Assembly (NCBI GenBank): GCA_013416795.1
Contig: RQSC01000011.1
Location: 174,721 to 238,720, forward strand
Origin: Prasinococcaceae sp. CCMP 1430
Lineage: Eukaryota > Plantae > Prasinodermophyta
DNA length: 64,000 bases
Direction of reading: 5' to 3'
The position numbers and the translations under genes were made by a program. This document shows, one piece after another, positions 27,499-44,298 of this stretch. Position 1 is the first letter of the stretch. Each line of letters starts with the position of its first letter. A model generated the notes under the pieces. That model saw only the letters and a list, made by a program, of their open reading frames with translations, did no database searches and was not told where the DNA came from.

Positions 27499-28519
27499 CG
27501 CAAGCGCGCGCGCGGGCGGGAAGGATGGTGGTGGTCTGTGTATTCCTCCGTGTATTATAGCATCCACAGCGAGCGGCCGCGCGCGCCTCCGCGCCGCCGG
27601 CGCGACCGCGCGCCAGCGCTCAGCGCCTCCCGAGCGCANNNNNNNNNNNNNNNNNNNNNNNNNNNNNNNNNNNNNNNNNNNNNNNNNNNNNNNNNNNNNN
27701 NNNNNNNNNNNNNNNNNNNNNNNNNNNNNNNNNNNNNNNNNNNNNNNNNNNNNNNNNNNNNNNNNNNNNNNNNNNNNNNNNNNNNNNNNNNNNNNNNNNN
27801 NNNNNNNNNNNNNNNNNNNNNNNNNNNNNNNNNNNNNNNNNNNNNNNNNNNNNNNNNNNNNNNNNNNNNNNNNNNNNNNNNNNNNNNNNNNNNNNNNNNN
27901 NNNNNNNNNNNNNNNNNNNNNNNNNNNNNNNNNNNNNNNNNNNNNNNNNNNNNNNNNNNNNNNNNNNNNNNNNNNNNNNNNNNNNNNNNNNNNNNNNNNN
28001 NNNNNNNNNNNNNNNNNNNNNNNNNNNNNNNNNNNNNNNNNNNNNNNNNNNNNNNNNNNNNNNNNNNNNNNNNNNNNNNNNNNNNNNNNNNNNNNNNNNN
28101 NNNNNNNNNNNNNNNNNNNNNNNNNNNNNNNNNNNNNNNNNNNNNNNNNNNNNNNNNNNNNNNNNNNNNNNNNNNNNNNNNNNNNNNNNNNNNNNNNNNN
28201 NNNNNNNCGCTCGCCGAGTGGCGGGCGCGGCGGCGCGCGGCAGCCGCCAGCGCCAGCCGCCGCGCCAAAATGCGCTCCCCCATTTCGCGCGCGCGCTCTT
28301 CCGCAGGAACGTATCGAAACGAACCCGCGCGCCCTCAGAAATTCAGAATCATCACCACGACCGCGAGTACGAACGGCCTCCCCACGGGAGAGCGATACCG
28401 CCGCATGTTGGGGTCGGGGGTTGTTGTTGGGGTACCGTGTGTATGCGTAGGGTTGTGAATCGCCATCAAACCGCATCCACACAGCGCGGCATTATCCGCG
28501 CACGGCCCGCTACGCGCGT

Positions 28520-30188
28520 GTGGCTGCGCAGGTGTTGGGCAGAGGTGTGTGTGGGGGGGGGGACGCCACAGTGACGCGCGGGGGCGGGTTGACCGGCGGA
28601 CGCGCGAGGGGAAGGGACGCGCGGAGCGCGGTCGCCCCGGGGGCGGAAGGGCGGACGGGGGACGCTCCATCGGCGCGCCGACCTCCCCCTCCCCCCGCGA
28701 CGGAGTGGCTGCGCGCGACGTGCCCCGGCGCCGCCGACGGCGCCGAGGCGCTGCACGCGCGCAAGTTCGCGCACGGCCAGAGCAACCCCACCTTCCTGCT
28801 GTCCCTGCGCGGCGCGCGAGGCCGCGAGCTGCGCAAGCTCGTGCTGCGCAAGCAGCCGCAGGGCAAGCTGCTGCCGCGGGCGCACGCGGTCGACCGCGAG
28901 CACCGCGCGCAGGCCGCGCTGAGCCGCGGCTCGGACGTGCCCGTGGCGCGCCAGCTGGCGTACTGCGCCGACAGGGAGGTCGCAGGCGCGCCCTTTTACG
29001 TCATGGAGCACGTGGACGGCACCGTCTTCCTGGATAGGAGCCTGCCGTCGCTCGCGCCGGAGCAGCGCGGCGCCGTGTACGCGTCGCTTGCGCGCTGCCT
29101 GGCGTCCATCCACTCTGCGGACGTCGAGGCGATGGGCATGGTCGACTACGGCCGCGCGGACGCGTACTGCGCGCGCACGCTCGCGACGTGGAAGCGCCAG
29201 TACCTGCGCGACTGGGGCAGCGACCCCATGCCGGAGATGGTGCGGCTCGCGGCGTGGCTGGAGCGCAACGCGCCGCCGGGCGCGAGCGCGCGGATGCCGA
29301 AGCCGGCGCTCATCCACGGCGATTACCGCCTGGACAACGTCATCTTTGGCCTTGGCGCCCGCGGCTCGGCGCCGGAGGCGCTCGCGGTGCTCGACTGGGA
29401 GCTGTCGACGCTCGGCGACCCGATGGCGGACTTGGCGTACCTGTGCATGACGCTGTACCACGCGCCGCCCGGCGAGGTCCCACAGCCCGGCCGCGGGCGA
29501 CTGGCGCCGCCGGAGGGCGCGCCCGCTGAGGCCGAGCTGGTGGCCCAGTACTGCAGGCTTCGTGGCGTGGCCGCGCCCGACGAGCGCGCGTGGACGTACT
29601 ACCTCGCGCTCGCGTGCTACCGCATGGCGGCCATCTGCGCGGGCGTGCACGCGCGCTCGAAGCGCGGCAACGCGAGCGCAGCCAACGCCGAGATGGTGGG
29701 CCTGGCGGGCAAGGCGTACGCGGCGTACGCCCTGGGACTCATCGACAGCGTGCCGCCGCGCAAGTGGTACCAGAGCGAGCGCTCCGCCGCGCTGCTCGCA
29801 CGCGTGAAGGCGTTCATGGACGAGCACGTGTACCCCGCGGAGAAGGAGTTCATGGCGGAGGACGCGGCGCGCGTGGGCGAGGCCCGCTGGCGGCCGTTCC
29901 CGCTCATGGAGGAGCTGAAGGCGAAGGCGCGCGCCGCGGGGCTGTGGAACCTCTTCATGCCGAGCGACACGCGAGACCTCATCGCGCCCGGCATCCGCGA
30001 GGCTGTGGACTGCGGGCCCGGCCTCACAAACCTCGAGTACGCGCCGCTGTCGGAGGCCATGGGCGCGTGCCCGTTCGCCCCCGAGGTCTTCAACTGCAGC
30101 GCCCCCGACACGGGCAACATGGAGACCCTGGCGCGGTACGGCACGCACGAACAGCAGGAGCGCTGGCTCAGGCCGCTGCTCGAGGGCA

Positions 30189-30219
<31 letters not shown>

Positions 30220-31048
30220 CGCGGTGGCATCCAGCGACGCGACCAACATGCAGGCGGTCTGCGCGCACGACGCCGCCACGGACCAGCTCGTGCTCAGCGG
30301 CCGCAAGTGGTGGGCGAGCGGCGCGCTCGACCCCAGGTGCAAGCTGGCCATCTTCATGGGGCGCGAGGCCGACGCGGAGGGAGACGCGGCCAGGGGCAAG
30401 GCCGCGCGCGAGCCGCACCGTCGCCACTCGATGGTGCTGGTGCCGCTGCCGCACCCGCGCGTCAAGATGCTGCGGCCGATGACCGTGTTCGGCTACGACG
30501 ACGCGCCGCACGGGCACGCCGAGGTGGTTTTTGACGAGGTGCGCGTCCCGGTGGACAGCGTGCTGCTCGGGCGCGGCCGCGGCTTCGAGATCGCGCAGGG
30601 GCGGTTGGGGCCCGGGCGGCTACACCACTGCATGCGGGTGGTCGGCCTTGGCGAGCGCTCGCTGGCGATGCTCATCGAGCGCGGCGCGCAGCGCAAGGCC
30701 TTCGGGCGAAGCCTGCTTGCGCTCTCGGCGGACAAGATCGCCGACGCGCGCGTGCAACTCGACATGGCGCGCATGGTGGTGCTGTCGGCGGCGGCGGAGC
30801 TCGACCAGCACGGCAATAAGCGCGCCAGGGGCCCGCTCGCCATCGCCAAGGTCGCCGCCCCGCGCGCCGCGATCAGCGCGATCGACGCGGCCATCCAGGT
30901 GTTTGGCGGGTGCGGCGTCAGCCAGGACGCCCACCTCGCGTACTTTTACGCGGGTGCGCGCACGCTGCGCCTCGCCGACGGTCCCGACGAGGTGCACCTG
31001 CAGACCATCGCCAAGGTCGAGGCCGCGAAGCACAAGGCGCGCCTGTAA
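28520..31048 (+). CDS. ACAD11: ACAD10/ACAD11 (IBR3)-like APH-kinase + acyl-CoA dehydrogenase with PTS1 -ARL
   Basis: GQSNPTF, HAVDRE, HGDYRLDN and VLDWELSTLGDPMAD (kinase-like domain); FNCSAPDTGNME, MTEPAVASSDATN, GRLGPGRLHHCMR and LADGPDEVH (ACAD); ends KARL*. True ATG is unresolved. Confidence 0.93.
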
Positions 31049-31101
31049 AACCGACAATTTTTCCAGCCGAGCGGAGCGTACGATACACGCTGCTCCTCAG
31101 C

Positions 31102-32220
31102 TCACTCGAAGTACTCGTTGGTGAAGATCGCCTCCGCGCGCACCTGGTCCCTGGGGATCCGCTCACCCACGTCGCCCGTTCGCAGCCCGTCCAGTGTCGC
31201 TGACTGGCCCTTGACCGGCTGCCGCGAGTTCGCGTACGTCGTGAGCAAGCCCTCTTTGTCCAGCCAGTCCAGGTACGCATTCCAGCGCTCGGGGGTCTGG
31301 CGCCCCCATTTGCCGTCGCCATCTAGGTACGCCGGCCCGAGCTTGCGCTGTGAGCGCACGCACATCTCGAGATCGAGACTGTCGTCGCCGCAGAGCTCGC
31401 GCGCGCCTTCCACGAGCTCGCGCGCTGCCTCCTCCGGATGCGCGGCCGCCCATTCATAGCCTTCTGCGGTGGCCGCAAGGAAGGCGCGCACGTCGTCCGC
31501 GCGCGCGTCAAGCGTCGCGGGCGCCGCGACGAGGCACGGCGAGCATGCGCGCGGTATTCCGAAGTCTTCGAGCACGAAGTAATTCAGCTTCTGATCGTCT
31601 CCGCTCATCTCGGCCTGCACGCCCTCCCAGCACGTAAATACCCACGTGGCGTCGGCCTCGCCCTTGAGAACGGTGTCCCACAGGCCAAGCATGGGCTCGA
31701 CACACTCCTCGTAGTCGCCCGTGCCGCCGTCGGCCTGGATGAGGCGCTGGATGATGCGCCCCTCGAAGCGTGCAGCATAGCTGGCGTACCGTTTCCCGTC
31801 GAGCTCGCGCGGCCGGGCGATGCCCTTACGCGCGGCGACCGCCGACGTGTTGCGCTGGCAGAGAGCAGCAACGGCGGTGAGCGTGCGCTCGCGCCGGCCG
31901 CTGGCGCCGCACGCAGGCAAGTTCCAGCCTACCACCCCCTCCGGCGAGTTCAGCGCAAAGGTCGCCTCTCCGGCGGACGCCAGGTCGCACGGCGTGACGT
32001 ACTTACCGCCATCGCCGCCGCTCGTGTAGCTGCCCTTATAGCGCGCGTCTGCCGCGGAGATTATCTCCACGGCGAGCCCCCTCTTCGCGTACATCCCACG
32101 CCTCGCGGCGACGAAGAACCCGGTATGGTTCGTGTTGGGCGTCCAGTCGAGCGCGACGACCACCGGCGCGCCGCCCCCACCACCACCGCCACAGCCTCCG
32201 CCACCACCCGCCGGGGCCAT
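31102..32220 (-). CDS. NMT1/THI5/ThiY-like (SsuA/THI5 family) thiamine-pyrimidine-precursor-binding protein, intronless
   Basis: LDWTPNTNHTGFFVA..G.YAKRGLAVEI, LDGKRYASY, GEADATWVFTCWEGV, SPCLVA, VRAFLAATAEGYEWA and W..Y..WL..EGL are the characteristic ThiY/NMT1-like pattern. Confidence 0.88.
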   Translation of the reverse strand: MAPAGGGGGCGGGGGGGAPVVVALDWTPNTNHTGFFVAARRGMYAKRGLAVEIISAADARYKGSYTSGGDGGKYVTPCDLASAGEATFALNSPEGVVGWNLPACGASGRRERTLTAVAALCQRNTSAVAARKGIARPRELDGKRYASYAARFEGRIIQRLIQADGGTGDYEECVEPMLGLWDTVLKGEADATWVFTCWEGVQAEMSGDDQKLNYFVLEDFGIPRACSPCLVAAPATLDARADDVRAFLAATAEGYEWAAAHPEEAARELVEGARELCGDDSLDLEMCVRSQRKLGPAYLDGDGKWGRQTPERWNAYLDWLDKEGLLTTYANSRQPVKGQSATLDGLRTGDVGERIPRDQVRAEAIFTNEYFE

Positions 32221-32936
32221 GGCGGCGCCCCACGCGCTCGCTCAGAGCCTACGCTGTGGCAGGAGCCCCCCTGCCGAGCCAGCCGGCGAGCACATCTGCG
32301 ATGGCCGTGGCTGCGGCGACACGTCAACGGCGCCCGTGCGGGCAGCACCACGTGGGTTTGTGCGGGCACCGCCACGTGCGCGTTGGGTGGCTCGCGCGCC
32401 ACCGTTACGCGTAATGCGGCCTGCGTGATACGCGCGGCGATGAGTGCGTGACCTCCGAGAGACGACAGATCGATGAAAGTGTGGAACTTCCGCACGAAGC
32501 TTCCGCGCGGGCAGCGTACGCGCGCGCGCGGGAGGAAAGGGGTGGGGAGTGCAGGGGCGCCACACTGCGCACGTGCCGCGCGCTACCTGCGACAGGGTCT
32601 ACGTGTTGAGGTGCGTGGGGAGGCGCGCGGGGGGGGGATCCGGAGAGCGCTCGTTCGGCCCTTACGGCGCCACCAAATGTGCTCCGCGCATTTTTTGGGC
32701 GCGCGCACGTTGGCAGACAGGCCCTCGCCTGCCACAAAACCCTTCGCGTTCCGCGGGCCTCGTCCCATGGGCGCGCGCGCGCGCGCGGCGATGGTTCCCG
32801 CGCGCGGCATGCCGGGTGTGCTGCTGACGCCGAGCGCTGGCCATTTCTCCAATGTGTGCCCGCCGCTGTCAGGCTTGCGTCCGTGCTTGCCCCGAGTTCT
32901 CTCATTTTAGCGGCCTTTTCTTCTCACGCACGGAGG

Positions 32937-34633
32937 ATGGTGCCGCTCGTGATGATGTCGGCGCTTGTCGCGGCCGGCGCCGCCGGGGCGCACGCGGCGG
33001 ACACGTGCGGCGTGTGCCACATCCAGTACCTGCACAAGGATGCCTCAACGCCCGAGCCGGCTCTGATGGACACGGCGTGCAGCGCCTTCGCCTCGGGCTC
33101 GTGCTGCACGCCCGAGACGGCCATCCTCGCGTCATCGAACAGTGGCGCAGAGCTCTACGGGTGAGCACAGTGCCTGCCGCGCGCGCGCGCGTGCGTGCGC
33201 GATGATGCGACGCCATGACTCGCAAACCGAGCAGCTGGCTGACGAGACGCATGCGCGTTGTCGCCGCCACATATCTTGTTGCGCGCGTGCGATGTCCCCC
33301 TCCTTCTTCCGCTCATTCTTGCGCGCCGCCATCCGAACGCCATCAGACCGGAGTACCGCTGGGACCGCTGCGGCCCGCTCTCGCCCGAGTGCGAGCGCTT
33401 CTTCGTGGCGGAGGCATGCTGGTATGAGTGTGCCGTCGAGGCCGGCAAGTACAGGAAGCAGTACGTGGGGGGCGTTGTGTGTGTTTCGTGTGTCATGTGT
33501 GTGTGTATGTTGTGTCGTCGTCTGCGCGCGCGTGTTGGTGTGTGTGACTTTCCTCCACCTTGCCATCGCCACTCTCGCACCTTGAGCTTCGGTGCGACTG
33601 ATGACAGCGATCGTCCGAGCGACTCTGCCGGCCGTTGCGCCGGCGCGAGCGTTGCTGACGCAGTCACTCGCCATCGAGTAGGGGTGCCCGGGGCATGGAC
33701 ACGCTCAGCGGTCCCTCTGCCTCGGTGCTGAGATCATACCCTCAATGACCGGACCAGGGTAATGCCTGCGTCGGAAACTCAGCGCCCTCACGCGCGCGGA
33801 CTCCACAGTGGCAATCCGCTGGCCAGTGCTGCAGTACGCACGGCTTCTCCAAAGCCGGAGGCTGTGGAAAGCACGCCGTCGCGCTCGTGGACTGCAGCGC
33901 GGAGGCTCGAGGTGCTGATTGATTGATGTGCGCGCCTGCGCTGCCCCTCCCTTACGCCTTCGCTGTCGCCGCCGCCGCGCCTGCCGCTGCGCGCCACGCC
34001 ACGCGCGCAGTGCCGACTGTGCTGCCAGCGCCAACGGCACCGGCAACTCATGGCAGATCTACCACGCCCCGATGAAGGGCTCCTACTGCGACGAATTCTA
34101 CGAGGCCTGCAAGGCCGACTTCTTCTGCTCGAGCACCGGCACCGGCTCGTTTTTCGACACTGTCGCAGACGAGTGCGGCACGCTGGGCGACATCCAGTCG
34201 AACTGCAAGTCTTTCGAAGAGCTGTACGGCAGCGGCGAGGCGCTCTGCGAGAAGATGTGGGACGACAGCTTCATCTACGTGCCCACGACCAACTTCTCCG
34301 ACCCTGACCACAACGCATCGGACGCGTTCGGTGCGCCCTGCGCGCGTGCTCTGCGGCCTGATGCGCCGCATTGTGCCGCCGCTTGTTGAAGCGAAGGCGT
34401 AGTGCTGACGCGACGTCGCCCTTGCGACTCCCGCAGTGTGGGACTGGCCTGCGAACGAAACCAACCCAAATGCCGCCGTGCTCGATCATGTCGAGTGGCC
34501 CGACTCCTGCAATGAGTCGGAGCACGACGCGTGGGTGGAGTTCGACCTGAAGGCGCTCGAGGAGTGCCCGAACGTCATCTCGGACGGCACCACTGGCAAT
34601 GTGACCAACGCGACGGGCGGATACAACCCTTGA
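32937..34633 (+). CDS. Secreted folate-receptor/riboflavin-binding-protein-fold (FOLR-like) protein, 284 aa
   Basis: Exons 32937-33160, 33347-33460, 34011-34330 and 34437-34633 sum to 855 nt = 285 codons including the stop. Signal peptide, then C..F...SCCT, YRWDRCGPLSPECERFF..EACWYEC, W.....P....YCDEFYEAC and C..FEELYGSGEALCEKMWDDSF. Confidence 0.87.
33676..33780 (+). ncRNA. TPP (thi-box) riboswitch aptamer in intron 2 of the FOLR-like gene
   Basis: P1 GAGT/ACTC; P2 AGGGGT/ATACCCT; P3 CCGGGGCA/TGCCTCGG with P3a GGAC/GTCC; conserved GCTGAGA; P4 CCG/CGG; P5 CAGG/CCTG with GTAATG loop; conserved GCGT..GGAA. Confidence 0.93.
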
Positions 34634-35135
34634 CGTGAGACCTCCTCCGACGAGCGAGCGAGAGATGATCGAGCGCGAGTGGGCACAACTGCCACCCCGC
34701 GCACTATATGTGACGAGCGCATACGAGTAGACACTACTGTGTCACCCCCGCGCACTATGACGCAGGGGGATCAGCGCGCGACGAAGCGCAAGACAAGCCA
34801 CAAGCAAGAGGAGCCGGGCGCGGGGCACGCGCAGCCCCCACTACCCCGGTCAGTTTCAACTGTCTTTGTTTTCGATTTGACGTGTTCGGGATCTCTCCCG
34901 TGGGGAGATGAGGTGGGAGCGGTTCGTTTGCCACGAAGCGGGTGTGCGCGGAGGCTGCAAAAACTGCCGAGGCGCGCAGGCCCACTGCGCGCGCGCGCGG
35001 CGCTGCGCAGGGCGGGGCGGGGCGGGGCGGGGCGGGCGCGTCGTGGACAACCTCTCCTTCCCTCTCTTCGAGGCTGGATGGGGCGCACGCGGACGCCGCG
35101 CCGCGAGGCGTGCCGTGGTCGCGCGCGCGGGCGCT

Positions 35136-35501
35136 ATGGGCGCCACAGGCGGTGGCGCCACGGCCGAGAGCAGGCAGCGCAGACAGCGCGTCTTCGCCAA
35201 GTACAAGGGGGAGGCAGCGGAGGCGAGGCGACGACAGCAAAAGAGACAGCGAGGCACGCCCGCGCGGGGCGCGTCAAACGCGCGCATTGACGCCGTGTCG
35301 CTGCTCGTGTGCTACATCGCGCCCGCGGTGCTCGCGCTCGCCTTGCTCGTGTCGCTCGTCAGCGTGCTCGGAACGCGCGCGCTCGAGGCCATGGCGTGGA
35401 GCAGCGCGGAGTCTGTCCACGCTACGTCCACGCTGCGCCGAGCGTCGATGATGATGTCCGGCGAGAGGGCGTCGAGCGCCGCAGCGGGCGGCGAGCTGTA
35501 G
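35136..35501 (+). CDS. Small hypothetical membrane protein (121 aa)
   Basis: ATG-TAG ORF with a basic N-terminus and one long hydrophobic segment (VSLLVCYIAPAVLALALLVSLVSVLG). Confidence 0.5.
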   Translation: MGATGGGATAESRQRRQRVFAKYKGEAAEARRRQQKRQRGTPARGASNARIDAVSLLVCYIAPAVLALALLVSLVSVLGTRALEAMAWSSAESVHATSTLRRASMMMSGERASSAAAGGEL

Positions 35502-35775
35502 CGAGCACCGGAGCGGCCCACGAGACGGGGACGGCCGTGCGCGTGCGCGCAGCAAGTGTCGTGGTCCCGCGCCGATCCTTGTTAATACTAATCCCATGTT
35601 GTATATGACATTCGCCCGCAAGAGCTTGCAGCGCGCGCGCGCGCCGCGCGGAGGGCCGTTGACACCGCCCGCCCGGCTGCCGTTGCAACCGCTACGGCAG
35701 GCTCGGTACTGTATGGCGAGGCTCCCCTGCGCGCGCGCCCGACCGCTCTACGCCCATCGACGGCGCTCGTCTCCC

Positions 35776-37260
35776 TCAGCGCTGTTTCTTGAACTCGCCG
35801 TTGCCACCGAGCGCGCCGTTGCCGTTGTGCGCGCCGTTGCCGTTGTGGTGCGTGCCGTTGCCGTTGTGCGTGCCGTTGCCATTCGCGGCGCCGCCGTTGG
35901 CAGGGCTGCGATGGGTGAGGCCATTGCCATTGCCGATGACCGCGACGCCGTGTCCGTTGAGCTCCGCAGGCGAGTTCTCGGCCTTGGCCTTCTTCGCCTT
36001 CTTCTTCTTGGCGTTGTACGTGTCGATATAGAACTGCACGAACAGAAGCAGGTACGAGCTGATGATGCCGACGCCGACAGCCGCGCCGTAGTCGGTGCCA
36101 ACGCAGAACTGCGGGCCGAACACCATGCGGTAGCCGACGGCGTAATAGATGCCAACGAGGTCGACCACGAACTGCAGGATCTGCAGGGCGGTCACGCACT
36201 GCTTCCACCACACGCGGATGCCGAGCGCCTTATTTGACGGATGCCGCGGGGGGCGGGCGGGCGAGCGTCAGCAATGCGTTCAGGGTATGCACCCCGCGAG
36301 AATGCGAGCGGCGCGCAGCATGGGAAGCCGCGCGTGCGCCACCTGGCGCACCTGCAGGCCGTAGTAGTAGTACATGATGATGTGCACGAACAGGTTGATG
36401 ACGACAGGCAGCCACTGGACGCCGAGCTCCTCGGTCATGGACACGTACACGAGCAGCAGGGTGGCGGGGTGGTGGTACACGTGCAAGAAAGGCGTGGGCT
36501 TGTTGCGCGCAGCCAGGAAGAACGTGTCGAGAAGCTCGTAGAACTGCGCGCCCGCGCGCGCCGAGCGAGGGCGCCGATCGTCAGCACGGGCGCGCTGGCG
36601 CGCTGCCGACGGTCGCTGGCACAACAGTCTTGCAGCACGCGCCGCGGCTGGCGCACTGGCGCGCTTGCCTGCGAGAGCCACGCGCGTCATGCGCTCACCT
36701 TGAAGACGTAGTTCGCGAAGTAGAGCGCCCACAGAAAGCCGGGCTTGATGAGCTCCTTCGAGCAGATGAAGCCTGTTCGCGCAGTGTCAGTCGCAGGCCC
36801 GCGCCTGTCACATCCGCGCCGCTGCTGTTGAAGTCTGGTGCGCGCTTCGAAAACGCCCGAACAGCCCTCTCAACACGCCGCAGGGGCGCGGCGGGGGGCG
36901 CACGCCGCTCGCGCGCCGATCAGCGCCTCCTCGCGGCGCGGTCGCTCGCCACGCACCGTGCAGGTTTTCGACGCGCGCCCAGCGCGTGGCGAGGCTGGCG
37001 ACCATCATGCTCCACAGCGCGAGCGAGCCTGCGCTGAGCATGAAGTTGTGCGCCACGAGCATCCACTTGAGGCTGAGCGGCTTCTCCCCGCGCGCGGCGC
37101 GCGCCGCCGCCCAGCGCTTGGTCGCCCACACGCCCGCCAGGTACGCCGCGCACGTGCCCACCGGCAGCTGCCAGTGCTCCTTGTACACCGGCGGCGTGTA
37201 CCCCTCGAAGCGCAGCGCCACGCCGCGCGCCGCCTCCGCGAGGCCCGCCATCCCCCCCAT
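35776..37260 (-). CDS. ELO/GNS1/SUR4 fatty-acid elongase
   Basis: Exons 37260-36957, 36772-36699, 36543-36352 and 36228-35776. Motifs HNFMLS, KFYELLDT, FLHVYHH, NLFVHIIMYYYY, TALQILQF and LLFVQFY. Confidence 0.92.
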
Positions 37261-37736
37261 CCGCGCGCCCTCCCCGCCCCGCGACGACGCCCAACGCAGC
37301 CCGAGGCAAGACTCAACGCAGGCGGCCGAAAAATTGGCGCGGCTGAGCTGCGGCCGGCGCCAATTTCGCGCGCGCGCGCGCGCGGTGTGTGGAGCCGCCG
37401 GCCGCTCAGGGCCGCTCAGGGCCGCTCACACGCGCACGCGCACGCGCGCGAACGGATGGATGCGAACGGGGTGCTCCGATCGCGCGATCGGTGCCGGCGC
37501 CGCGAAAATCAAAAATCGAGACAGCGGAAAGCGGCGGCGAAAGGGGCGGCGCAGCGGAAAAGCGTGGGAGGAAAATCCGGAACGAGCGCGATTCGGGCGG
37601 AGGGGGCTGCCCGGGGCGAGAGCGCGGCGCGCGCGTTCGCGGCCGCGAATTCGGACAGACGGACGGACGGCAAACGTCCGGTTCGTGTCGTGGTCGCGAC
37701 GCCGCGCGCGCGCGCGCGAGCCGACAGGCTGTTTGT

Positions 37737-38061
37737 GTGCAAGTGTGTGTGTGTGCGTGTGTGTGGTTGCGTGTGTGTGTGTGTGTGTGTGTACCCTGTG
37801 TGTGTGTGCGTGCACGGGTGCGCGGCTGCTTCAAGAGCAAGCGCCAAGAGCAAAGCCTCGCTCCTGCCATGCGGTGCTGTGCCTGCGTCCGCGAGCTGTG
37901 ATCCATCCATCGACACTCGCGCTGCGCGCCGCCGCGTCTGGCGTGCTCCCTTGCTTGCGAGACGGGCGGCGCTCCACGTGCGAGGCGTGGTGGTGCCGGC
38001 GGCTGCGGCCGAGCCCGAGCCCGCGTGTGTCGCATGTCGATACACACACACACACACGCAC

Positions 38062-38114
<53 letters not shown>

Positions 38115-38143
38115 CGAGCACACACACACACACACGCACACAA
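37737..38143. repeat. (GT)n and (CA)n microsatellites, including an inverted (CA)n-(TG)n-(CA)n array
   Basis: (GT)n at about 37737-37810; at 38041-38143 a (CA) tract, a long (TG) tract, then another (CA) tract. Confidence 0.9.
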
Positions 38144-39082
38144 ACATTCGCTTCGCTTCACTGCCTGCCGGTGGCGGTGGGGGTGGTGCGCTTGCATGCG
38201 CGCGCTCATGCGAGCGCGAAAGCGCCGGCGCGCCGCGTGCGCGCGAGCGCGCTCATCGAAACGCACTGACCGCCTGCATTGACACCCACACCGCAGGTCA
38301 CCGGATCACCCCACTCCGACTGGCCTTTTCGCCGCGGCCAGTGACGGGAGGATTGATTGAACGAAACGGGGCTCACCGCAGGGCGGATGACGGGGATTCG
38401 GATTCGGGTCTGTGCTTCGGCTCACTGCCCGAGGATGACCGGGATGGCGTATTGGGTTTTTCTGGGGGAGCTCGCGCGCGGCGCGCGGCGCTGCCGCCTG
38501 CACCGCGGCAGCCGAGGGGGACGGGAGGAGGGGAGGGGCTTCTTCCCCTCGGCCTGATTCTCACGCGCGCGCGCACGCGCGCAAGTGCTGGGTCGGCGTT
38601 CGTTCCCCTCGCCCTCTACGCCCACCCACCGGGGGGCCACAGCGCGCGCGCGCGCGCGCCGGGCGCGCCGGCGCACGCGCCGGGCCGGCCGCCGCTCTGC
38701 GCGCGCGCGCGCCAGCTAGCTGGGAGGGAGGAGGGGGCGCGGCGCGAGGGCGCGCTCGCCCCAGGTTGCTGGCTGGCGCCCTCGTCCGCCGAGGGTGAAT
38801 GTGCACCAACTCGTCGACGGACGCCCCCGTGCTGCCCGCTCAAACCGGTGGCACGAAGACGATATCGGGCGGCGCCGCGAGGGCGGTGTTGAAGTGGCTG
38901 CACGCTGCCGCGGCGGGCGCGGACGCGGCGAGTGCCGGCGACGCCGGCGCGGCGTCACGTCGCCCGCGGCGCGCACGGCGCCGCCCGGCACGCGGCCGAT
39001 GTCCTCGCGATGGTGGCAGAACGCGCGCCGACATCGCAGGACGGGCAGTGCCCCCGGCGCAACCGAGGGGGGCGCTCCAGGC

Positions 39083-40369
39083 ATGATGAATGGCAGCGCC
39101 AGCAGAGAAAGGCCGCTCGCCGGGGGGGCTCTGCAGCGGCTGGGAGGCGCCCTCATGTTGCCCGCCAGGCGCCACTCCACCGTTCGCGCGAGGCGCAATA
39201 CCTTACGCCTATGCGCGTGCGTGCTGCTCTCGCTGTTCGTCCTATACCACAATCGGTTTCTGTTCTTCTCGAACGGCTCGATGGGCAACCGGCATGACTG
39301 GTACACCCTCGCGCGGCAGCGCCACACGCTGCGCGTGCTGGGTGCCACGCTGATGGACTCGGATGCCGCGCGCCTCCGCTCTGACTTCGGCGCATCGGCC
39401 GCGCCGCCCGAGGGCTTCGACGCGCACAAGCACGCGTGGGCGGTGACCATTGGCACGGCGACCTACGACAAGCGCGCCGTGCAGGCCACGCTGGCCTCCA
39501 TCGCGGCGCACTCGGTCGTGCGCAACGTGATAGTGATGTACGCCGACAACATCCCGCGCGAGCGCGTCGAGGCCATGCTCACGCCAGAGCTTCGCCGCTG
39601 CCTGCAGCTCGAGCTCGTGGCGGCGGATCCGCTGGCCTGCCCCAACGCCGACGCGTGGCACACGTGGCGCTATCATGGCACCTACATGCGCTTCAATCTC
39701 TGGGGGCTGACGCACTTTGAGCGCATCGTGTACGTCGACCTGGACTTCATCGTGCTCGACCGCCGCTTTGACAACCTCTTCTGGTACCGCATGCCGAAGG
39801 ATGCGCTCATCGGTGCCGCGCCTTACAGCTCGGGGTTGTGCTACTCGGGTGACGCTCCCACCACCTTCAGCCTGGGGCGGCCGTGGTGCCCGTTCGCGAG
39901 CGCGATGGATGACGGGCTGTTCAACGCAGGAATGATGGTGCTCAAGCCCGATGAGGCCACCGCGCAGGGCCTGCTGGCGATGCATGCCCGGACGCAGCTC
40001 GAGGCGCGCAACTGGCTGACGGGGAGGCGCTTCTGCGTGACGAGCCAACCGGTACTGCAGCACTACTTCGTGTGGCTCAAGCGGGGCGCGGTGGACTATC
40101 TGCCGGTCGCCTTCAACTTTTGGCCCAAGGCGGGCGCGCACCTGCCCGACACGAGATTCGGGGCGCACTTCGTTGGCGAGAAGAAATTCAAGCCGTGGGC
40201 GCTTGACAGGCGTAAGGCGCTGGCCACGTCCACTTCCCACGCGGAGTGGTGGGGCGACCTCGACCGCGCAGGCCAAAGTGGGCAGGCATGTGCCGCCAAC
40301 GAGAGCGCAGCAGCGCTCGGCTTCCGCCCGCTGCACGTTGCTCAGCCCTCTCGCGCGGATGGTCACTGA
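39083..40369 (+). CDS. Glycosyltransferase family 8 (glycogenin/galactinol-synthase-like), type II membrane
   Basis: TM segment CACVLLSLFVLY; MRFNLWGLTHFERIVYVDLDFIVL (DxD), FNAGMMVLKP, SQPVLQHYF and AHFVGEKKFKPW. Start codon is uncertain. Confidence 0.85.
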   Translation: MMNGSASRERPLAGGALQRLGGALMLPARRHSTVRARRNTLRLCACVLLSLFVLYHNRFLFFSNGSMGNRHDWYTLARQRHTLRVLGATLMDSDAARLRSDFGASAAPPEGFDAHKHAWAVTIGTATYDKRAVQATLASIAAHSVVRNVIVMYADNIPRERVEAMLTPELRRCLQLELVAADPLACPNADAWHTWRYHGTYMRFNLWGLTHFERIVYVDLDFIVLDRRFDNLFWYRMPKDALIGAAPYSSGLCYSGDAPTTFSLGRPWCPFASAMDDGLFNAGMMVLKPDEATAQGLLAMHARTQLEARNWLTGRRFCVTSQPVLQHYFVWLKRGAVDYLPVAFNFWPKAGAHLPDTRFGAHFVGEKKFKPWALDRRKALATSTSHAEWWGDLDRAGQSGQACAANESAAALGFRPLHVAQPSRADGH

Positions 40370-40955
40370 CGAGTGTGCTCCAAGAGCGAGCGCCCCGCCC
40401 TCCGTGCGCGCCGCCTCATCCATCTAACGGCTGGAGCGACCGCCGCTGCAGCACGTGGCCGCTCGCTTGCGCCACGAGCGCGCGCGAGCGAGGTAACACT
40501 TCTCTCTCCGGTCGCGCCGTCCTGCCTGCCGCGCAGATGTCGGTGCTAGTGCTCCACAGTCAGTCGCTCGCTCGCGTGCGCGCCGCGCGCGCATCGACAC
40601 GTGTGGCTGGTGAAGGATCGTTTTTAGGTGGCCAAAAGGTCAAAACGAGACTCTCTGTTGCAGGACTCTGGTGCCTGCCCGGGCCACCGAATGTGTCGGT
40701 GCCGTCCACCTCTCGGGCCGCGAAAGACATTGCTTGAAAATTTTGTCGTGACCCGCTCTTGTGCTGCTGTCACGCAGGCCGCCGGGGCAGCTCTGTTGGG
40801 GTGCTGATACCACACCTGCGGTATCTAGCTCTGTACGTCGGTAGTAAAGGAAGAAGTTGGTGGGTTCGTTCGTTTGTCGTGTGCAGGTGCGCTTGTGGCG
40901 GCACGCTCGGCATAGGTCGGCTACTGCGGTGCCTTCCCTCGTGTTTTCATCGTCA

Positions 40956-42693
40956 TCAGTGTGTCGTGAGCTCCTCGTGGCAAACCAACACGCTGGGCGC
41001 TTTCGCAGAAGGACCGGCATGCCCAAACTCAGACTCGTTGCTGCCGACACGCTGCAGGCGCCACCTGCTCGAAGGAGTCGGAGATGCCAGTCGAGCAAGG
41101 GCGGGTGTAGGATGCGCGCAGTCGATGCTCACGTCATCGCGGTCGACATCCATCGGGGCCGACACGATCGGCGCCGCGGCCGCCCCCCCGTGACTGCGGC
41201 ATCCATCGTCGGGAGTGATCGGAGAGAACTGCTGCGCCCGCATGCTCGGCCGGCGCTGGAGCTGTTGCTGCTGCTGCGTCGCGCCCGACCGATCGTCGAC
41301 AATGGACATCGTCTCCGACTCGCCGACGCTGAGGCCCGGTGAGGTCAGCTGCTGCTTTTGGTCGGCAGCCGCGAGGTCGCTGGGCAGCCAGCCAGCTTGG
41401 CCGCCAGCCCGCGCCTGCTGCTCACGCTGTCGCTGCTCCGCTTGCAGCTGCTGCTGCCTTGTCCTGGCCTCCGCGGCCGCCTGGTTGCTCTCTTCTATCC
41501 ACCCGCTATGCATGACGCACATGGCGCGCCTGAGGGCGCGCACTGCGCGCTGGTCATCGACGCTGAGGTCAAGCAGTCGTCGCACGCGCTCCTCGGCGGT
41601 GGACACGAGCGGCCCACGGGGCGCGCCCGCGTCCTCGCTCAGCACGTGGACGATGCACGTGAGAGCCGCCGCTGCGCAGATGCGCGGCGCGACGAGGCGC
41701 GCGTTGTCGAAGGACATGGCCCCCAGGATCAAGTCATCGGCGGTGCCGAAGATCTGGTCCTGGTGAGACTCGTCCATTCCGTAGAGGCTCCACTGCGCCG
41801 ACACCTCCGGCGATGCCTTCACGGCCAGGGCGAGCAGCATCGAGCGAAGCCCTAGATCCTGTCGCAGTGCGTCGACGAACATGAAGGGCGTCGGCGCGAG
41901 GGATTCAACCTTCCATCCCACTGCGGCCAGCACCCGCCACTCCATTGCCGCAAGCTCCTTCCGCGTCGACACGCGCGCGGCGCTGCCTGCTTCCGCGCCA
42001 CCCGGCGCCGACGCCCCGCTCGCCTCGACGGGCCACAAGACCGACGTCAGGAAGATCTCGCCATACAGCTGGCGCTCCTGCTTGGGGTCGTATTTTTGGT
42101 CGAGTGCCTTGAGCGACAGCGTGAGGCATGCCACAGCCGCCACGACGAGGGGGCGCGAGGTGGGCGCCGAGAGCAGGGAGCGCGTTCGATGGCGGTCGGC
42201 AAGCGAGGCCTCCAATCTCGAGGATTGCTGCACCTCGGCGGCGACGTACCGCTCGAGCAGCTGCGACGCGTGCCACGTCGCATCGCGCACCCACTCGCAC
42301 CTTCGCTGGAGGTAGCCCATGCCCATCGCGAAGGCTGCTTGCGCCCCGAAATCAGTGATCCATCGCGAGGCCTCGTCGAGCCACGCGGCGGCCTCGGCGC
42401 GAGCAGCCGGCCAGTAGGTGCTCTCGCCCCAATCAACAGAGGCCGTGCTGTAAGCGCCGCCGTTGGTACCCCCTGCGCGTTCTGACTCGGCGCTCGCGCG
42501 CTTGGCCAGAAACGCCTCCTCGCTGGCGCGCAGCTCCGCCACCAGGGCTGGAACGCTCGCAGAGGCCCTGAATGTTGCCACCGCGCCTACGGAAGGGGGC
42601 GCCGGCGTCGGGGCGCGCGTCGGCATGCAGGCGGCGCCGAGTGGGACCAGGTTCTTGGGCGCGTACGCCTGAAGGTGCCCCCGCCCCTGCTGG

Positions 42694-42735
<42 letters not shown>

Positions 42736-42908
42736 GTGTGCGCTTCTTTCTGGTCAGGCCGCATCACCCTCGCGAGACATTGCTGCTGCTGCTGCTGCTG
42801 CTGGGACCACGGCTTCGACTCCAAGGTGTGCGGCGGTCGCGGCTCCACTGCGGCCGCCGCCGAGAAGGCGCGGTCGGCCTCTTTTTGCGCGGCACATTGC
42901 CTCTGCAT
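40956..42908 (-). CDS. Cyclin (D-type-like) with polyQ tracts
   Basis: Cyclin box: RAEAAAWL..., QLLERYV, VAAVACLTLSLK, ELAAMEWRVLAAVGWKV..PTPFMFV. PolyQ near both termini; LVCHE near the C-terminus. Confidence 0.75.
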
Positions 42909-43689
42909 CTCGTCTGCCTGCGTCACTTGCGTCTGTCTGAGCCCACCAGCGCGCTCGCTAGGGCTTTGTCTGACCCGGCCAACCCACCACCAGGTTTTTC
43001 CGCGGCGCTCTGCTGCGGCCCGCCCTTGGGAGCCGACCCGCCCTCCTCTGGCGCGCCCGGCGCCTCCCCCTTCTCACCCTCCGCAAGGAGGGTCCAGCCG
43101 AGGCCTTCCCTCGCCGCGAGGCTCTGCCTCCGCCCGCGGCGTCCGCGTCCGCGCCGGCCCCCGCCGCGCGCACGCGCGCGCGCGCGCGAAGTCTGGCAGT
43201 TTGTGCGCGCGCGCGCGCGCGCGCGCGGCCGCGCCCCGAAAAAAAAACCATTCGACATTTCCACTCCCAATCCGCAGTCACTTCGCATTTCGCCCGTTCG
43301 CGAATGCGAACACGCAACTCTTCCGCGCGGCCCCGCCGGCAGATCGTTTTTTCGGTTTGCGCGCGCGCGTCCCGTGCGATTCGGTACTCATCACCCAATC
43401 ACGCCGGCAAATGAGCGCGCGCGGGCGCGCGCGCGCGCGCGCGCGCCGCGCCGCGGCCCCGGATCGGATTCCCCCTTGCAGGGGTGTTGACAGCCGCGCG
43501 GCGATGCACAGCGAGGGCACACCATCGAGCGGGCGAGAGAGAGAGACACGGCTCCGGCCGGCTCGTGTCGACAATTCGATATCGATGACGCGCGTCGATA
43601 TCGACTTGACACGCGCACGCACAGACGGCATGCCGCGCACACGCGCGTGCACACGCGCGTGTGGGCCCTCGAGCACACGCGCAAACACG

Positions 43690-43870
43690 CGCACGCATGC
43701 ACACACACACACCGTCACACACACACAGGCATACACAGGCACACACAGGCACACACAGGCACACATACACACACACGCACACACACATGCACACGCACAC
43801 ACACACACGCCCGCGCGCACGCACACACAACCGCAGTGCCATGCCACACGCGCACACACGTCCGCGTGCG
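43690..43870. repeat. Imperfect (CA)n / ACACACAGGC tandem repeat
   Basis: ACACACAGGC-like units repeated about four times inside CA tracts. Confidence 0.85.
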
Positions 43871-44298
43871 CGCGCGCGCGCTCCCATGTGCCGCGCGTTC
43901 GACCTCCGATTCGAATCTCAATCCGACGTGCGCGCGCGGGCGGCCGCGCCGTGCCCCGCCGCCCGCCCGCGTGNNNNNNNNNNNNNNNNNNNNNNNNNNN
44001 NNNNNNNNNNNNNNNNNNNNNNNNNNNNNNNNNNNNNNNNNNGGGCGCGGCGGATCGGGCCGGGCCGCGCCGTGCGAGGCGCGGGCGCGCGGCCCTGGCC
44101 GGCGCTCTCGGTCTCGGTCTCGTCCTGGTTGACGCACAATGGACTGACTGTCGAAGGTCGACCTGAGGTTGCTACAGTACAAGCAGCACTAGTACTTCTA
44201 TCATACTATCCGTCCATCGCACCATGGTGGTCGACGAGCGCTAGAGCTAGCTAGAGAGAGTCATGGACTAGCTAGAGAGAGCGGCTGGGCTGCAGGGG

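Follow-up and report, generated by a model that had tools for sequence, protein, structure and literature searches.

A folate-receptor-like gene with an intronic TPP aptamer and an NMT1/ThiY-like gene lie head-to-head in Prasinoderma coloniale

The 64,000-nucleotide stretch of DNA that was analysed (the window) is from Prasinoderma coloniale, a green alga that depends on vitamin B1, and carries two divergent genes, an NMT1/THI5/ThiY-like gene on the minus strand and a folate-receptor-like (FOLR-like) gene on the plus strand, the latter with a TPP riboswitch aptamer in its second intron (Table 1). The two ATG codons are 716 nt apart (32221-32936), and the runs of N nearest to the pair are at 27639-28207 and 43974-44042, so that there is no gap between the genes. 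The first-pass annotation had described both genes, the aptamer, starts about 716 bp apart, and a region free of assembly gaps from 28208 to 43973, and all of this was borne out. Its statement that genes of both kinds are riboswitch-linked in Micromonas was also right, and there they are the folate-receptor-like ATS1 and the SSUA/THI5-like gene (PF09084) (McRose 2014, PMC4260697).

Table 1. Features of the divergent gene pair (positions in the window)
Feature	Position	Strand	Remarks
NMT1/ThiY-like gene, PRCOL_00002959 type	31102-32220	-	Single exon, 372 aa ORF
Divergent intergenic/promoter region	32221-32572		NMT1 ATG to known FOLR-like 5'UTR start, at most 352 nt
Three CACGTG (G-box) palindromes	32349-32575		At 32349, 32373, and 32570; 3 in ~230 nt
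5'UTR non-coding exon, minimum extent	32573-32610	+	Exact match to first 13 residues of P0382, then GT donor at 32611
5'UTR intron	32611-32872	+	GT...AG; AG/G junction gives P0382 VLR-LASVLAP
FOLR-like gene PRCOL_00002958	32937-34633	+	Four coding exons, Folate_rec domain, 284 aa
Coding exon 1	32937-33160	+	Signal-peptide-like N-terminus, start of Folate_rec
Coding exon 2	33347-33460	+	Folate_rec positions 48-84; junction KYRKH/ADC confirmed by P0123, P0371, and P0383
Intron 2, riboswitch-bearing	33461-34010	+	550 nt, donor GTACGT
TPP riboswitch aptamer (Rfam RF00059)	33670-33793	+	Inside intron 2, 42.9 bits
Coding exon 3	34011-34330	+	Pfam Folate_rec positions 86-162, E 1.6e-13
Coding exon 4 including stop codon	34437-34633	+	Junction DAF/V/WDW confirmed by P0121 and P0371

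The spliced product of the FOLR-like gene agrees at every residue with PRCOL_00002958 (P0371) in the P. coloniale annotation, and it matches the Pfam Folate_rec profile (PF03024) over positions 1-162 of 172 with 107 bits (E 1.2e-30), well past the gathering cut-off of 29.8 bits. Among PDB structures, folate receptor beta, riboflavin-binding protein, and Juno resemble it to much the same degree (E 1e-12 to 5e-14). Since members of this family bind folate, riboflavin, or protein, membership does not give the ligand of the FOLR-like protein. The Asp and the Tyr of the folate receptor beta segment IQDTCLYEC align with Glu97 and Tyr101 of the FOLR-like protein, and these two residues are almost invariant across the algal FOLR-like family. 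We take the folate-contact residues of human folate receptor alpha to be Asp81 and Tyr85. The hydrophobic N-terminus (MVPLVMMSALVAAGAAGAHA/AD), read by eye, indicates that the protein is probably secreted. The mRNA is fully spliced in the environmental JGI sequences P0382 and P0383, and entries in MMETSP show that both the FOLR-like and the NMT1 genes are transcribed in culture.

The aptamer matches the RF00059 model from end to end (positions 1-105, E 3.7e-6 with 5 kb searched) with a score that falls below the Rfam gathering score of 54.3 bits, and a default scan at the gathering threshold missed it and a scan in E-value mode recovered it. The low score is due to a 33-nt insertion in P3 and to the missing P3a. 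The core is intact, with CUGAGA in J3-2, ACCC, and the pyrophosphate sensor UAAU...GCG of P4/P5. Helices P1, P2, P4, and P5 are present with non-canonical marks at a few pairs, and stop codons occur within the aptamer in all three frames. Rfam scans, which were used for this survey because a crude regular expression proved too strict, found a same-strand TPP aptamer in the FOLR-like genes of 23 of 39 metagenomic loci; L006, L007 (three copies), and L008 have FOLR-linked aptamers as well, and several others likewise score 38.7 to 52 bits. The FOLR-like gene of the next-closest relative, L014, has its aptamer in the 3'UTR (55.9 bits). By its Folate_rec domain and its TPP aptamer, the P. coloniale FOLR-like gene is classed by sequence as of the ATS1 type.

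The aptamer could be a non-functional relic, as has been reported for those of THIC and SSSP in diatoms, in which case TPP would not regulate the FOLR-like gene in P. coloniale. Well-conserved TPP aptamers on related diatom genes do not switch (PMC9544697) and therefore sequence alone cannot establish the function of the one described here. The sub-threshold score is in line with a relic, but the core nucleotides and helices are all intact in a full-length match to the model, and the aptamer is unchanged in the environmental contig L003, which is 98.9% identical to the locus. Within the green lineage, intronic TPP switches have been proven in Chlamydomonas THIC and THI4. A search for an expression platform, in which the aptamer was paired with five candidate splice sites, gave duplex energies no better than those of dinucleotide shuffles, and this too would suit a relic; one apparent exception was rejected because it overlaps the aptamer's own P1 helix. 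On the other hand, the culture-derived MMETSP ORF P0121, which is an ORF only and not a whole transcript, begins at Met21 of exon 3, and this pattern is consistent with regulated intron retention. Taken together, we regard a relic as very unlikely.

The start of P0121 is suggestive of an mRNA that keeps the 3' portion of intron 2. A 103-nt cassette exon at 33809-33911, which would shift the frame, was also considered as a poison exon, but it leaves the 151-aa MMETSP ORF unexplained; a partly retained intron 2 that includes its 3' portion is therefore preferred. In the mechanism that we propose, the aptamer-containing part of intron 2 would be kept at high TPP, either by intron retention or by splicing to an alternative 3' site at the 5' edge of the aptamer, and translation of this mRNA would end at a stop within the aptamer. 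At low TPP the whole of intron 2 would be removed, and the full-length binding protein would be made and exported. The riboswitch would thus set the level of productive mRNA for an exported protein that is rich in Cys and has the folate-receptor fold.

The minus-strand ORF product matches Pfam NMT1 (E 2.6e-42) and is 99.5% identical to P0347, and an NCBIfam search with it returned no family and no equivalog. Its closest similarity in PDB is to 4nmy (E 2.5e-30), with ThiY (3ix1) at E 3.5e-16, and yeast THI5 matches it with an E value of only 0.046; by these sequence comparisons the protein resembles binding proteins of the ThiY type more closely than it does fungal THI5. The PLP-binding Lys62 and the substrate His66 of THI5 (GLKAMIH) are replaced by N and G (TFALNSPEG), an equivalence drawn by eye against the ScTHI5 segment DMGLKAMIH, which HMMER left unaligned, and no member of the green-type NMT1 clade has K or H at these positions. 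The N-terminus is Gly-rich without a signal peptide, and MAPAGGGGGCGGGGGGGAPVVV runs directly into the mature domain. Neither an export signal nor partner genes for an ABC permease or ATPase were found for this gene, which is flanked by the FOLR-like gene and an ACAD10-like gene. The protein is eukaryotic and presumably cytosolic. A natural fusion of NMT1 with Thiamine_BP (PF01910) exists in P0023, and it is suggestive of a tie between the NMT1-like family and the binding of thiamine or HMP.

The first-pass annotation had called the pair a candidate riboswitch-controlled module with an intracellular pyrimidine carrier, and neither description was supported. An Rfam scan of both strands of 30500-35500 found no second aptamer near NMT1, and the lone aptamer, being within an intron of the FOLR-like pre-mRNA, would act only in cis on the FOLR-like mRNA. 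As for a pyrimidine carrier, P. coloniale is reported to have no thiamine-biosynthesis enzyme except that for the last phosphorylation (Li 2020, PMC7455551), so that HMP or FAMP, once bound, could be passed on to no known enzyme.

P. coloniale has two NMT1 paralogs, the FOLR-adjacent PRCOL_00002959 and PRCOL_00000582, with a dS of 0.24 and a dN/dS of 0.17, and these values indicate that both are under purifying selection. Homology between them covers the coding sequence and about 19 nt outside it, and both flanks differ. In the tree, the duplication is later than the divergence from relatives A (proteins P0362 and P0271) and B, the closest ones sampled. The copy beside the FOLR-like gene has the longer branch and is the more derived of the pair, and P0356 is its sister. 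The TARA contigs L001 and L002, in which NMT1 is 91% identical in nucleotides and is flanked by FA_desaturase and Dis3 genes, were considered as a close relative without the adjacency and were rejected as such; cluster look-up and identities show that they are the PRCOL_00000582 locus of P. coloniale.

The 5'UTR of the FOLR-like gene starts at or before 32573, as shown by the spliced environmental mRNA P0382, whose N-terminal read-through maps to 32573-32611. It had been proposed that the genes share a bidirectional promoter; what holds from this is the short upstream region of at most 352 nt, and the two genes may share it as a promoter. Three G-boxes lie in or at the edge of this region, and the window as a whole contains 42 CACGTG. 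A comparable triple is found at the 5' end of a relative's FOLR-like gene (L014, 183-304), and in relative B the G-box cluster goes with the FOLR-like gene and not with NMT1. In a genome of 25 Mb and 7,139 genes, the probability that the FOLR-like gene would lie next to one of the two NMT1 genes by chance is about 6e-4, a post hoc figure.

The pairing was not seen elsewhere. NMT1 and FOLR-like genes occur together in none of the 68 fetched loci, and in Fistulifera solaris, according to the literature, they are on separate scaffolds. The comparison covered Cymbomonas, three Mamiellophyceae-like NMT1 loci, relative B, 39 JGI FOLR-like loci, and F. solaris. For relative B the result is limited, in that its FOLR contigs stop within exon 1 and do not overlap with those of NMT1, and its NMT1 has a second upstream variant. 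Absence of the adjacency from related algae was half of what the first-pass annotation had said would speak against its module. The divergent pair is thus most likely lineage-specific. The same annotation had considered the pair uncharacterised, and for the riboswitch linkage of the two families this does not hold, as it is already published (McRose 2014), but the adjacency is unreported in the literature searched.

Two explanations of the adjacency differ in whether the pairing was selected. If an intronless NMT1 duplicate landed by chance beside the FOLR-like gene, the two would be regulated and would act independently. The recent, lineage-specific duplication, the homology that ends about 19 nt beyond the coding sequence with different flanks, the lack of conservation among the loci compared, and the commonness of divergent neighbours in a genome of this size all agree with this. 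It sits less well with the low prior of landing by one particular gene, with the thiamine links of both families elsewhere, and with a spacer so short that fully independent transcription is less likely. We regard neutral adjacency as possible but doubtful. The other explanation is a true two-component B1-scavenging unit, in which a bidirectional promoter serves an extracellular FOLR-like catcher and an intracellular NMT1-like carrier. Riboswitch linkage is known independently for each family in other algae, transcripts of both genes are present in culture, and purifying selection acts on both NMT1 paralogs in an alga that has neither TH1 nor THIC; the small chance of adjacency, the short regulatory space between the genes, and the joining of an NMT1-like protein to a thiamine-binding domain in P0023 also point to such a unit. 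However, the adjacency is missing from every other locus compared, the adjacent NMT1 copy is a recent and faster-evolving duplicate without an aptamer, and no HMP-using enzymes are reported. NMT1-like genes in Micromonas and diatoms show little or no response to B1, and the G-boxes in relative B do not accompany NMT1. The uptake and salvage proposal of the first-pass annotation is thus partly supported, and a selected unit of this kind is unlikely.

The explanation that we favour, and consider probable, is that an ATS1-type gene with a TPP switch in intron 2 has a recent, lineage-specific NMT1 copy head-to-head with it, with a possible shared promoter of at most 352 nt. The exported FOLR-like protein would probably capture thiamine or a thiamine-related compound, of which the alga makes none. 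The NMT1-like neighbour would be a cytosolic protein of the ThiY/NMT1-like binding fold, without the catalytic Lys and His of THI5 and without a riboswitch of its own, and would be one of two paralogs that arose recently in the Prasinoderma lineage and came to sit beside the FOLR-like gene. Co-transcription of the two genes is plausible, and their functional coupling is unproven. The low probability of chance adjacency argues for some functional link and is underweighted by this lineage-specific explanation. After the recent duplication, a ThiY-like copy may have been recruited beside ATS1 such that an exported catcher and a cytosolic acceptor of intact thiamine or a thiamine-derived compound form one pathway, in an alga with none of the known salvage enzymes; we regard this as rather improbable.

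Vitamin B1 is required by many marine picophytoplankton. Of the candidates for its acquisition that a riboswitch flags, the main ones are ATS1 and the NMT1-like genes of the green type, and P. coloniale offers a clean case, having no known synthesis or salvage enzymes, a putative intronic, splicing-type TPP switch on its ATS1 homolog, and two NMT1-like copies. If the pair were functionally coupled, it would suggest which proteins to test jointly. If recruitment is true, the adjacency would for the first time tie together genetically two orphan algal gene families that are associated with riboswitches, and it would point to a route of B1 acquisition that has not been described. The adjacency, as an observation from a single lineage, is a testable but weak lead. 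The position of the aptamer, in the 3'UTR in the nearest relative and in a coding-region intron in P. coloniale, is a small, concrete case of riboswitch position mobility in eukaryotes.

Among known systems, ThiY of Bacillus halodurans (3IX1) and the C. difficile solute-binding protein 4NMY are type II periplasmic-binding-fold proteins with full-length similarity to the NMT1-like protein, but unlike in those systems the algal protein lacks both a signal peptide and a lipobox, and neither ABC permease nor ATPase genes lie next to its gene. The SSUA/THI5-like genes of Micromonas RCC299, Aureococcus, and Fistulifera solaris are likewise single-exon PF09084 genes without a signal peptide, and the P. 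coloniale gene falls, as they do, in the prasinophyte/chlorophyte-type clade. They bear their own TPP aptamer in the 3'UTR, whereas neither P. coloniale copy does, and unlike them the P. coloniale gene is duplicated with one copy adjoining the ATS1 homolog. Chlamydomonas reinhardtii THIC and THI4 also have an intronic TPP aptamer in the green lineage, and retained aptamer sequence leads to a premature stop (Croft et al. 2007); the P. coloniale host gene codes for a putative binding protein and not for a biosynthetic enzyme. The closest parallel is ATS1 of Micromonas RCC299, CCMP2099, and NEPCC29 and of Bigelowiella natans, which also combines PF03024 and a signal-like N-terminus with a TPP aptamer on one transcript (McRose 2014), and which in B1-starved Micromonas is induced up to 80-fold (PMC4260697). 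The riboswitch-linked diatom FOLR genes share these three features (Llavero-Pasquina et al. 2022). P. coloniale and the ATS1-bearing Micromonas both are without TH1 and THIM, and the P. coloniale gene differs from these published ATS1 and FOLR genes in carrying its aptamer in a coding-region intron instead of the 3'UTR.

The first-pass annotation had read the NMT1/ThiY-like gene and the FOLR-like gene of this window as a candidate divergent, riboswitch-controlled module for vitamin B1 uptake and salvage. The pair itself, head-to-head and gap-free with the NMT1 gene on the minus strand and the FOLR-like gene on the plus strand, was confirmed by the ORF, the Pfam matches and the N-run map, the stretch between the N runs at 27639-28207 and 43974-44042 being free of N (window G+C, ~68%). 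Four exon pieces of the FOLR-like gene match consecutive portions of Pfam Folate_rec, and the spliced product of 284 aa is the same at every residue as P0371, the annotated Prasinoderma coloniale protein PRCOL_00002958, which over its full length reaches 107 bits against Folate_rec. This identity assigns the window to P. coloniale, as does P0121, a UniRef/MMETSP entry under that species name. The NMT1 gene corresponds to PRCOL_00002959 (P0347, 99.5% identity), and the consecutive numbering of the two genes fits their adjacency. On the far side of the NMT1 gene, a long ACAD10/11-like ORF (28520-31048, +), in which an APH phosphotransferase domain precedes three acyl-CoA dehydrogenase domains, converges on it with the stop codons 53 nt apart, and 3' of the FOLR-like gene there are ORF pieces (35776-36732, -) that by eye are fatty-acid elongase-like ('HVYHH' motif).

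Features of the divergent gene pair, in window coordinates
Feature	Position	Strand	Basis
NMT1 ORF	31102-32220	-	uninterrupted, 372 aa; Pfam NMT1, full profile, E 2.6e-42
FOLR-like coding exon 1	32937-33160	+	splice-site inspection
FOLR-like coding exon 2	33347-33460	+	splice-site inspection
TPP aptamer	33670-33793	+	Rfam E-value search of 30500-35500; one found
FOLR-like coding exon 3	34011-34330	+	splice-site inspection
FOLR-like coding exon 4	34437-34633	+	splice-site inspection

The exon 3/4 junction was confirmed by P0121, an MMETSP ORF, and P0371, and the exon 2/3 junction, between KYRKH and ADC, by P0123 (from a 67%-identical relative), P0371 and the JGI sequence P0383, which confirms the GTACGT donor at 33461 too. 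The N-terminus of another JGI sequence, P0382, is translated 5'UTR that maps to 32573-32611 and then to 32873 onward. The first exon of the FOLR-like gene is thus non-coding and is followed by an intron in the 5'UTR (32611-32872), so that no more than 352 nt separate the transcript start from the NMT1 ATG. Three clustered CACGTG palindromes lie in the spacer 5' of the FOLR-like gene (32349-32575) and three further ones are clustered at the 5' end of a relative's FOLR-like gene (L014:183-304). No such cluster was found beside NMT1 loci, and the palindromes are perhaps a cis-element conserved with the FOLR-like gene.

At the Rfam gathering threshold tRNA alone was reported, and E-value mode was needed for the TPP aptamer, which scores 42.9 bits against a cut-off of 54.3 (E 3.7e-6, model positions 1-105). 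Its core is intact (CUGAGA, ACCC and the P4/P5 sequence 'GGUAAUGCCUGCG'), it has a 33-nt insertion in P3 and no P3a, and the same aptamer is found in an environmental contig that is 98.9% identical (L003). It is located within intron 2 of the FOLR-like gene (33461-34010), and the same E-value search of both strands of 30500-35500 gave no second TPP aptamer near the NMT1 gene. Of the proposed two-gene control, the aptamer stands, but control by the switch is confined to the FOLR-like gene.

Each of the three reading frames meets a stop within the aptamer (the UGA of CUGAGA, a UGA in J2-4, and UAG/UAA at P1 and L5), so that an mRNA retaining it could not encode the C-terminal two-thirds of the Folate_rec domain. 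The switch would probably act through such aptamer-retaining mRNA, with a premature stop and a truncated domain. P0121, type:complete according to its source, starts at Met21 of exon 3, as would follow from retention of the 3' end, or more, of intron 2, in which an in-frame TGA lies at ~33916; the MMETSP cultures were presumably grown in vitamin-replete medium. In P0382 and P0383 all introns have been removed. Directly 5' of P1 and inside it there is a branch-like CTGAC with AG dinucleotides after it, and none of the pairings sought between splice sites and aptamer was better than in shuffles.

The ThiY-likeness of the NMT1 protein was upheld by its similarity to 4NMY, a binding protein of C. 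difficile (E 2.5e-30), and to 3IX1, the ThiY of B. halodurans (E 3.5e-16), the match to yeast THI5 being far weaker (E 0.046). No export signal was found in the protein and no ABC partner genes beside the gene, so that it is no classical ThiY. Lys62 and His66 of ScTHI5 fall within 'DMGLKAMIH', for which the equivalent segment here, matched by eye because HMMER gave no alignment there, is 'TFALNSPEG'; no green-type clade member has K or H at those two positions, and on this by-eye reading the protein would not be a THI5-type synthase. An environmental protein, P0023 (ENA contig of 1,748 nt), is a 493-aa single ORF with an algal-type NMT1 domain and Thiamine_BP (PF01910, YkoF-like). It is 50% identical to the NMT1 protein, and the fusion speaks for binding of thiamine or HMP as the context of the family. 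According to Li et al. 2020 (PMC7455551), the only thiamine-biosynthesis enzyme of P. coloniale is that of the final phosphorylation, and therefore an HMP or FAMP carrier would feed no known enzyme. The suggested intracellular pyrimidine carrier conflicts with this reported gene content; if the NMT1-like proteins are B1-related here, thiamine itself or an undescribed compound is the likelier ligand.

A second P. coloniale NMT1-like gene, PRCOL_00000582 (P0346), found by cluster look-up, is 92.7% identical in amino acids to the FOLR-adjacent copy and has a fatty-acid desaturase gene on one side and a Dis3-like gene on the other (L001:2070-3185, L002:1676-2791). L001 had been read as an ortholog from another species; this was rejected because it is the locus of this paralog. 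The nucleotide identity of L001/L002 to window 31102-32220 (91%) is confined to the CDS, ending ~19 nt outside it, and the paralogs have a dS of 0.24 and a dN/dS of 0.17. A maximum-likelihood tree joins the two copies as sisters and leaves outside them both relative A (79% identical) and relative B, the closest relative whose contigs could be used (FOLR ~65% and NMT1 63% identical, both in the same samples). Branch lengths are ~0.07 for the FOLR-adjacent copy, which evolves faster, and 0.003 for the other. The duplication is therefore recent, and the FOLR-NMT1 adjacency is probably recent as well. At residues ~308 and ~317 the window NMT1 differs from annotated and MMETSP PRCOL_00002959 (D/H and P/S) and equals the paralog, which could reflect gene conversion, a strain difference or an assembly difference.

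By tblastn, no fetched locus held both genes. The survey, which left out Micromonas commoda, covered Cymbomonas L005 (10 kb each side, two FOLR copies), JGI loci L006 and L007, three Mamiellophyceae-like NMT1 loci (L009-L011), relative-B NMT1 loci L022-L024 (3.5 kb upstream), relative-B FOLR loci L014 and L015 (5.8 kb downstream, all relative-B FOLR contigs stopping inside GC-rich exon 1) and 39 JGI FOLR-like loci (161.8 kb in total). F. solaris has its THI5-like genes on scaffold BDSP01000097 but its FOLR genes on another, BDSP01000147. The pairing is probably recent and is not conserved among the loci examined, and the two-gene riboswitch-controlled module is only partly supported. A functional link between the two genes is possible but unlikely; what speaks for it is the short spacer and the low probability, computed post hoc, of the FOLR-like gene lying by chance next to one of two NMT1 genes (~6e-4, with 7,139 genes; Li et al. 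2020, PMC7455551). The lack of conservation carries a caveat for relative B, whose NMT1 contigs have a second upstream variant (L025-L027 and L029 versus L022-L024 and L028). The two sequences diverge 116 nt before the ATG, at a point that in the longer contigs directly follows an AG; structural variation, a second locus or misassembly could account for this. L009-L011 share a conserved downstream neighbourhood (B9-C2, Bromodomain, a ~1,000-aa protein and an AAA ATPase).

McRose et al. 2014 (PMC4260697) named the folate-receptor-like riboswitch gene ATS1, with an aptamer in the 3'UTR in Micromonas RCC299, CCMP2099 and NEPCC29 and in Bigelowiella and up to 80-fold induction without thiamine, and reported 'SSUA/THI5-like' PF09084 genes of RCC299 and Aureococcus whose aptamers lie in the 3'UTR; the link given for Micromonas in the first-pass annotation was therefore correct. 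L009-L011 differ from the RCC299 case, having no TPP aptamer at E <= 0.1. Diatom FOLR and green-type NMT1 genes bear aptamers and receptor-mediated uptake has been proposed for FOLR (Llavero-Pasquina et al. 2022, PMC9544697). From these two reports, both gene families and their riboswitch link are already known; the literature searched yielded no paper pairing Prasinoderma with riboswitches. A same-strand TPP aptamer, 5' or 3' of the CDS, is present in 23 of the 39 JGI metagenome FOLR-like loci and also in FOLR-like loci L006, L007 and L008. Two tandem FOLR-like genes in L007 (6004-10267) have three TPP aptamers between them, one 5' of each gene and one 3' of the first. The relative-B FOLR-like gene lacks P. 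coloniale coding introns 1-3, has instead a single intron within its counterpart of exon 1 and carries its aptamer in the 3'UTR (L014 1312-1403, 55.9 bits; also L016:1154-1245), which makes the coding-intron placement in P. coloniale a positional variant. The unusual J2-4 and P4/P5 sequence that the two aptamers have in common suggests one lineage that moved position. Whereas the published ATS1 aptamer is in the 3'UTR, that of the P. coloniale FOLR-like gene is in coding intron 2.
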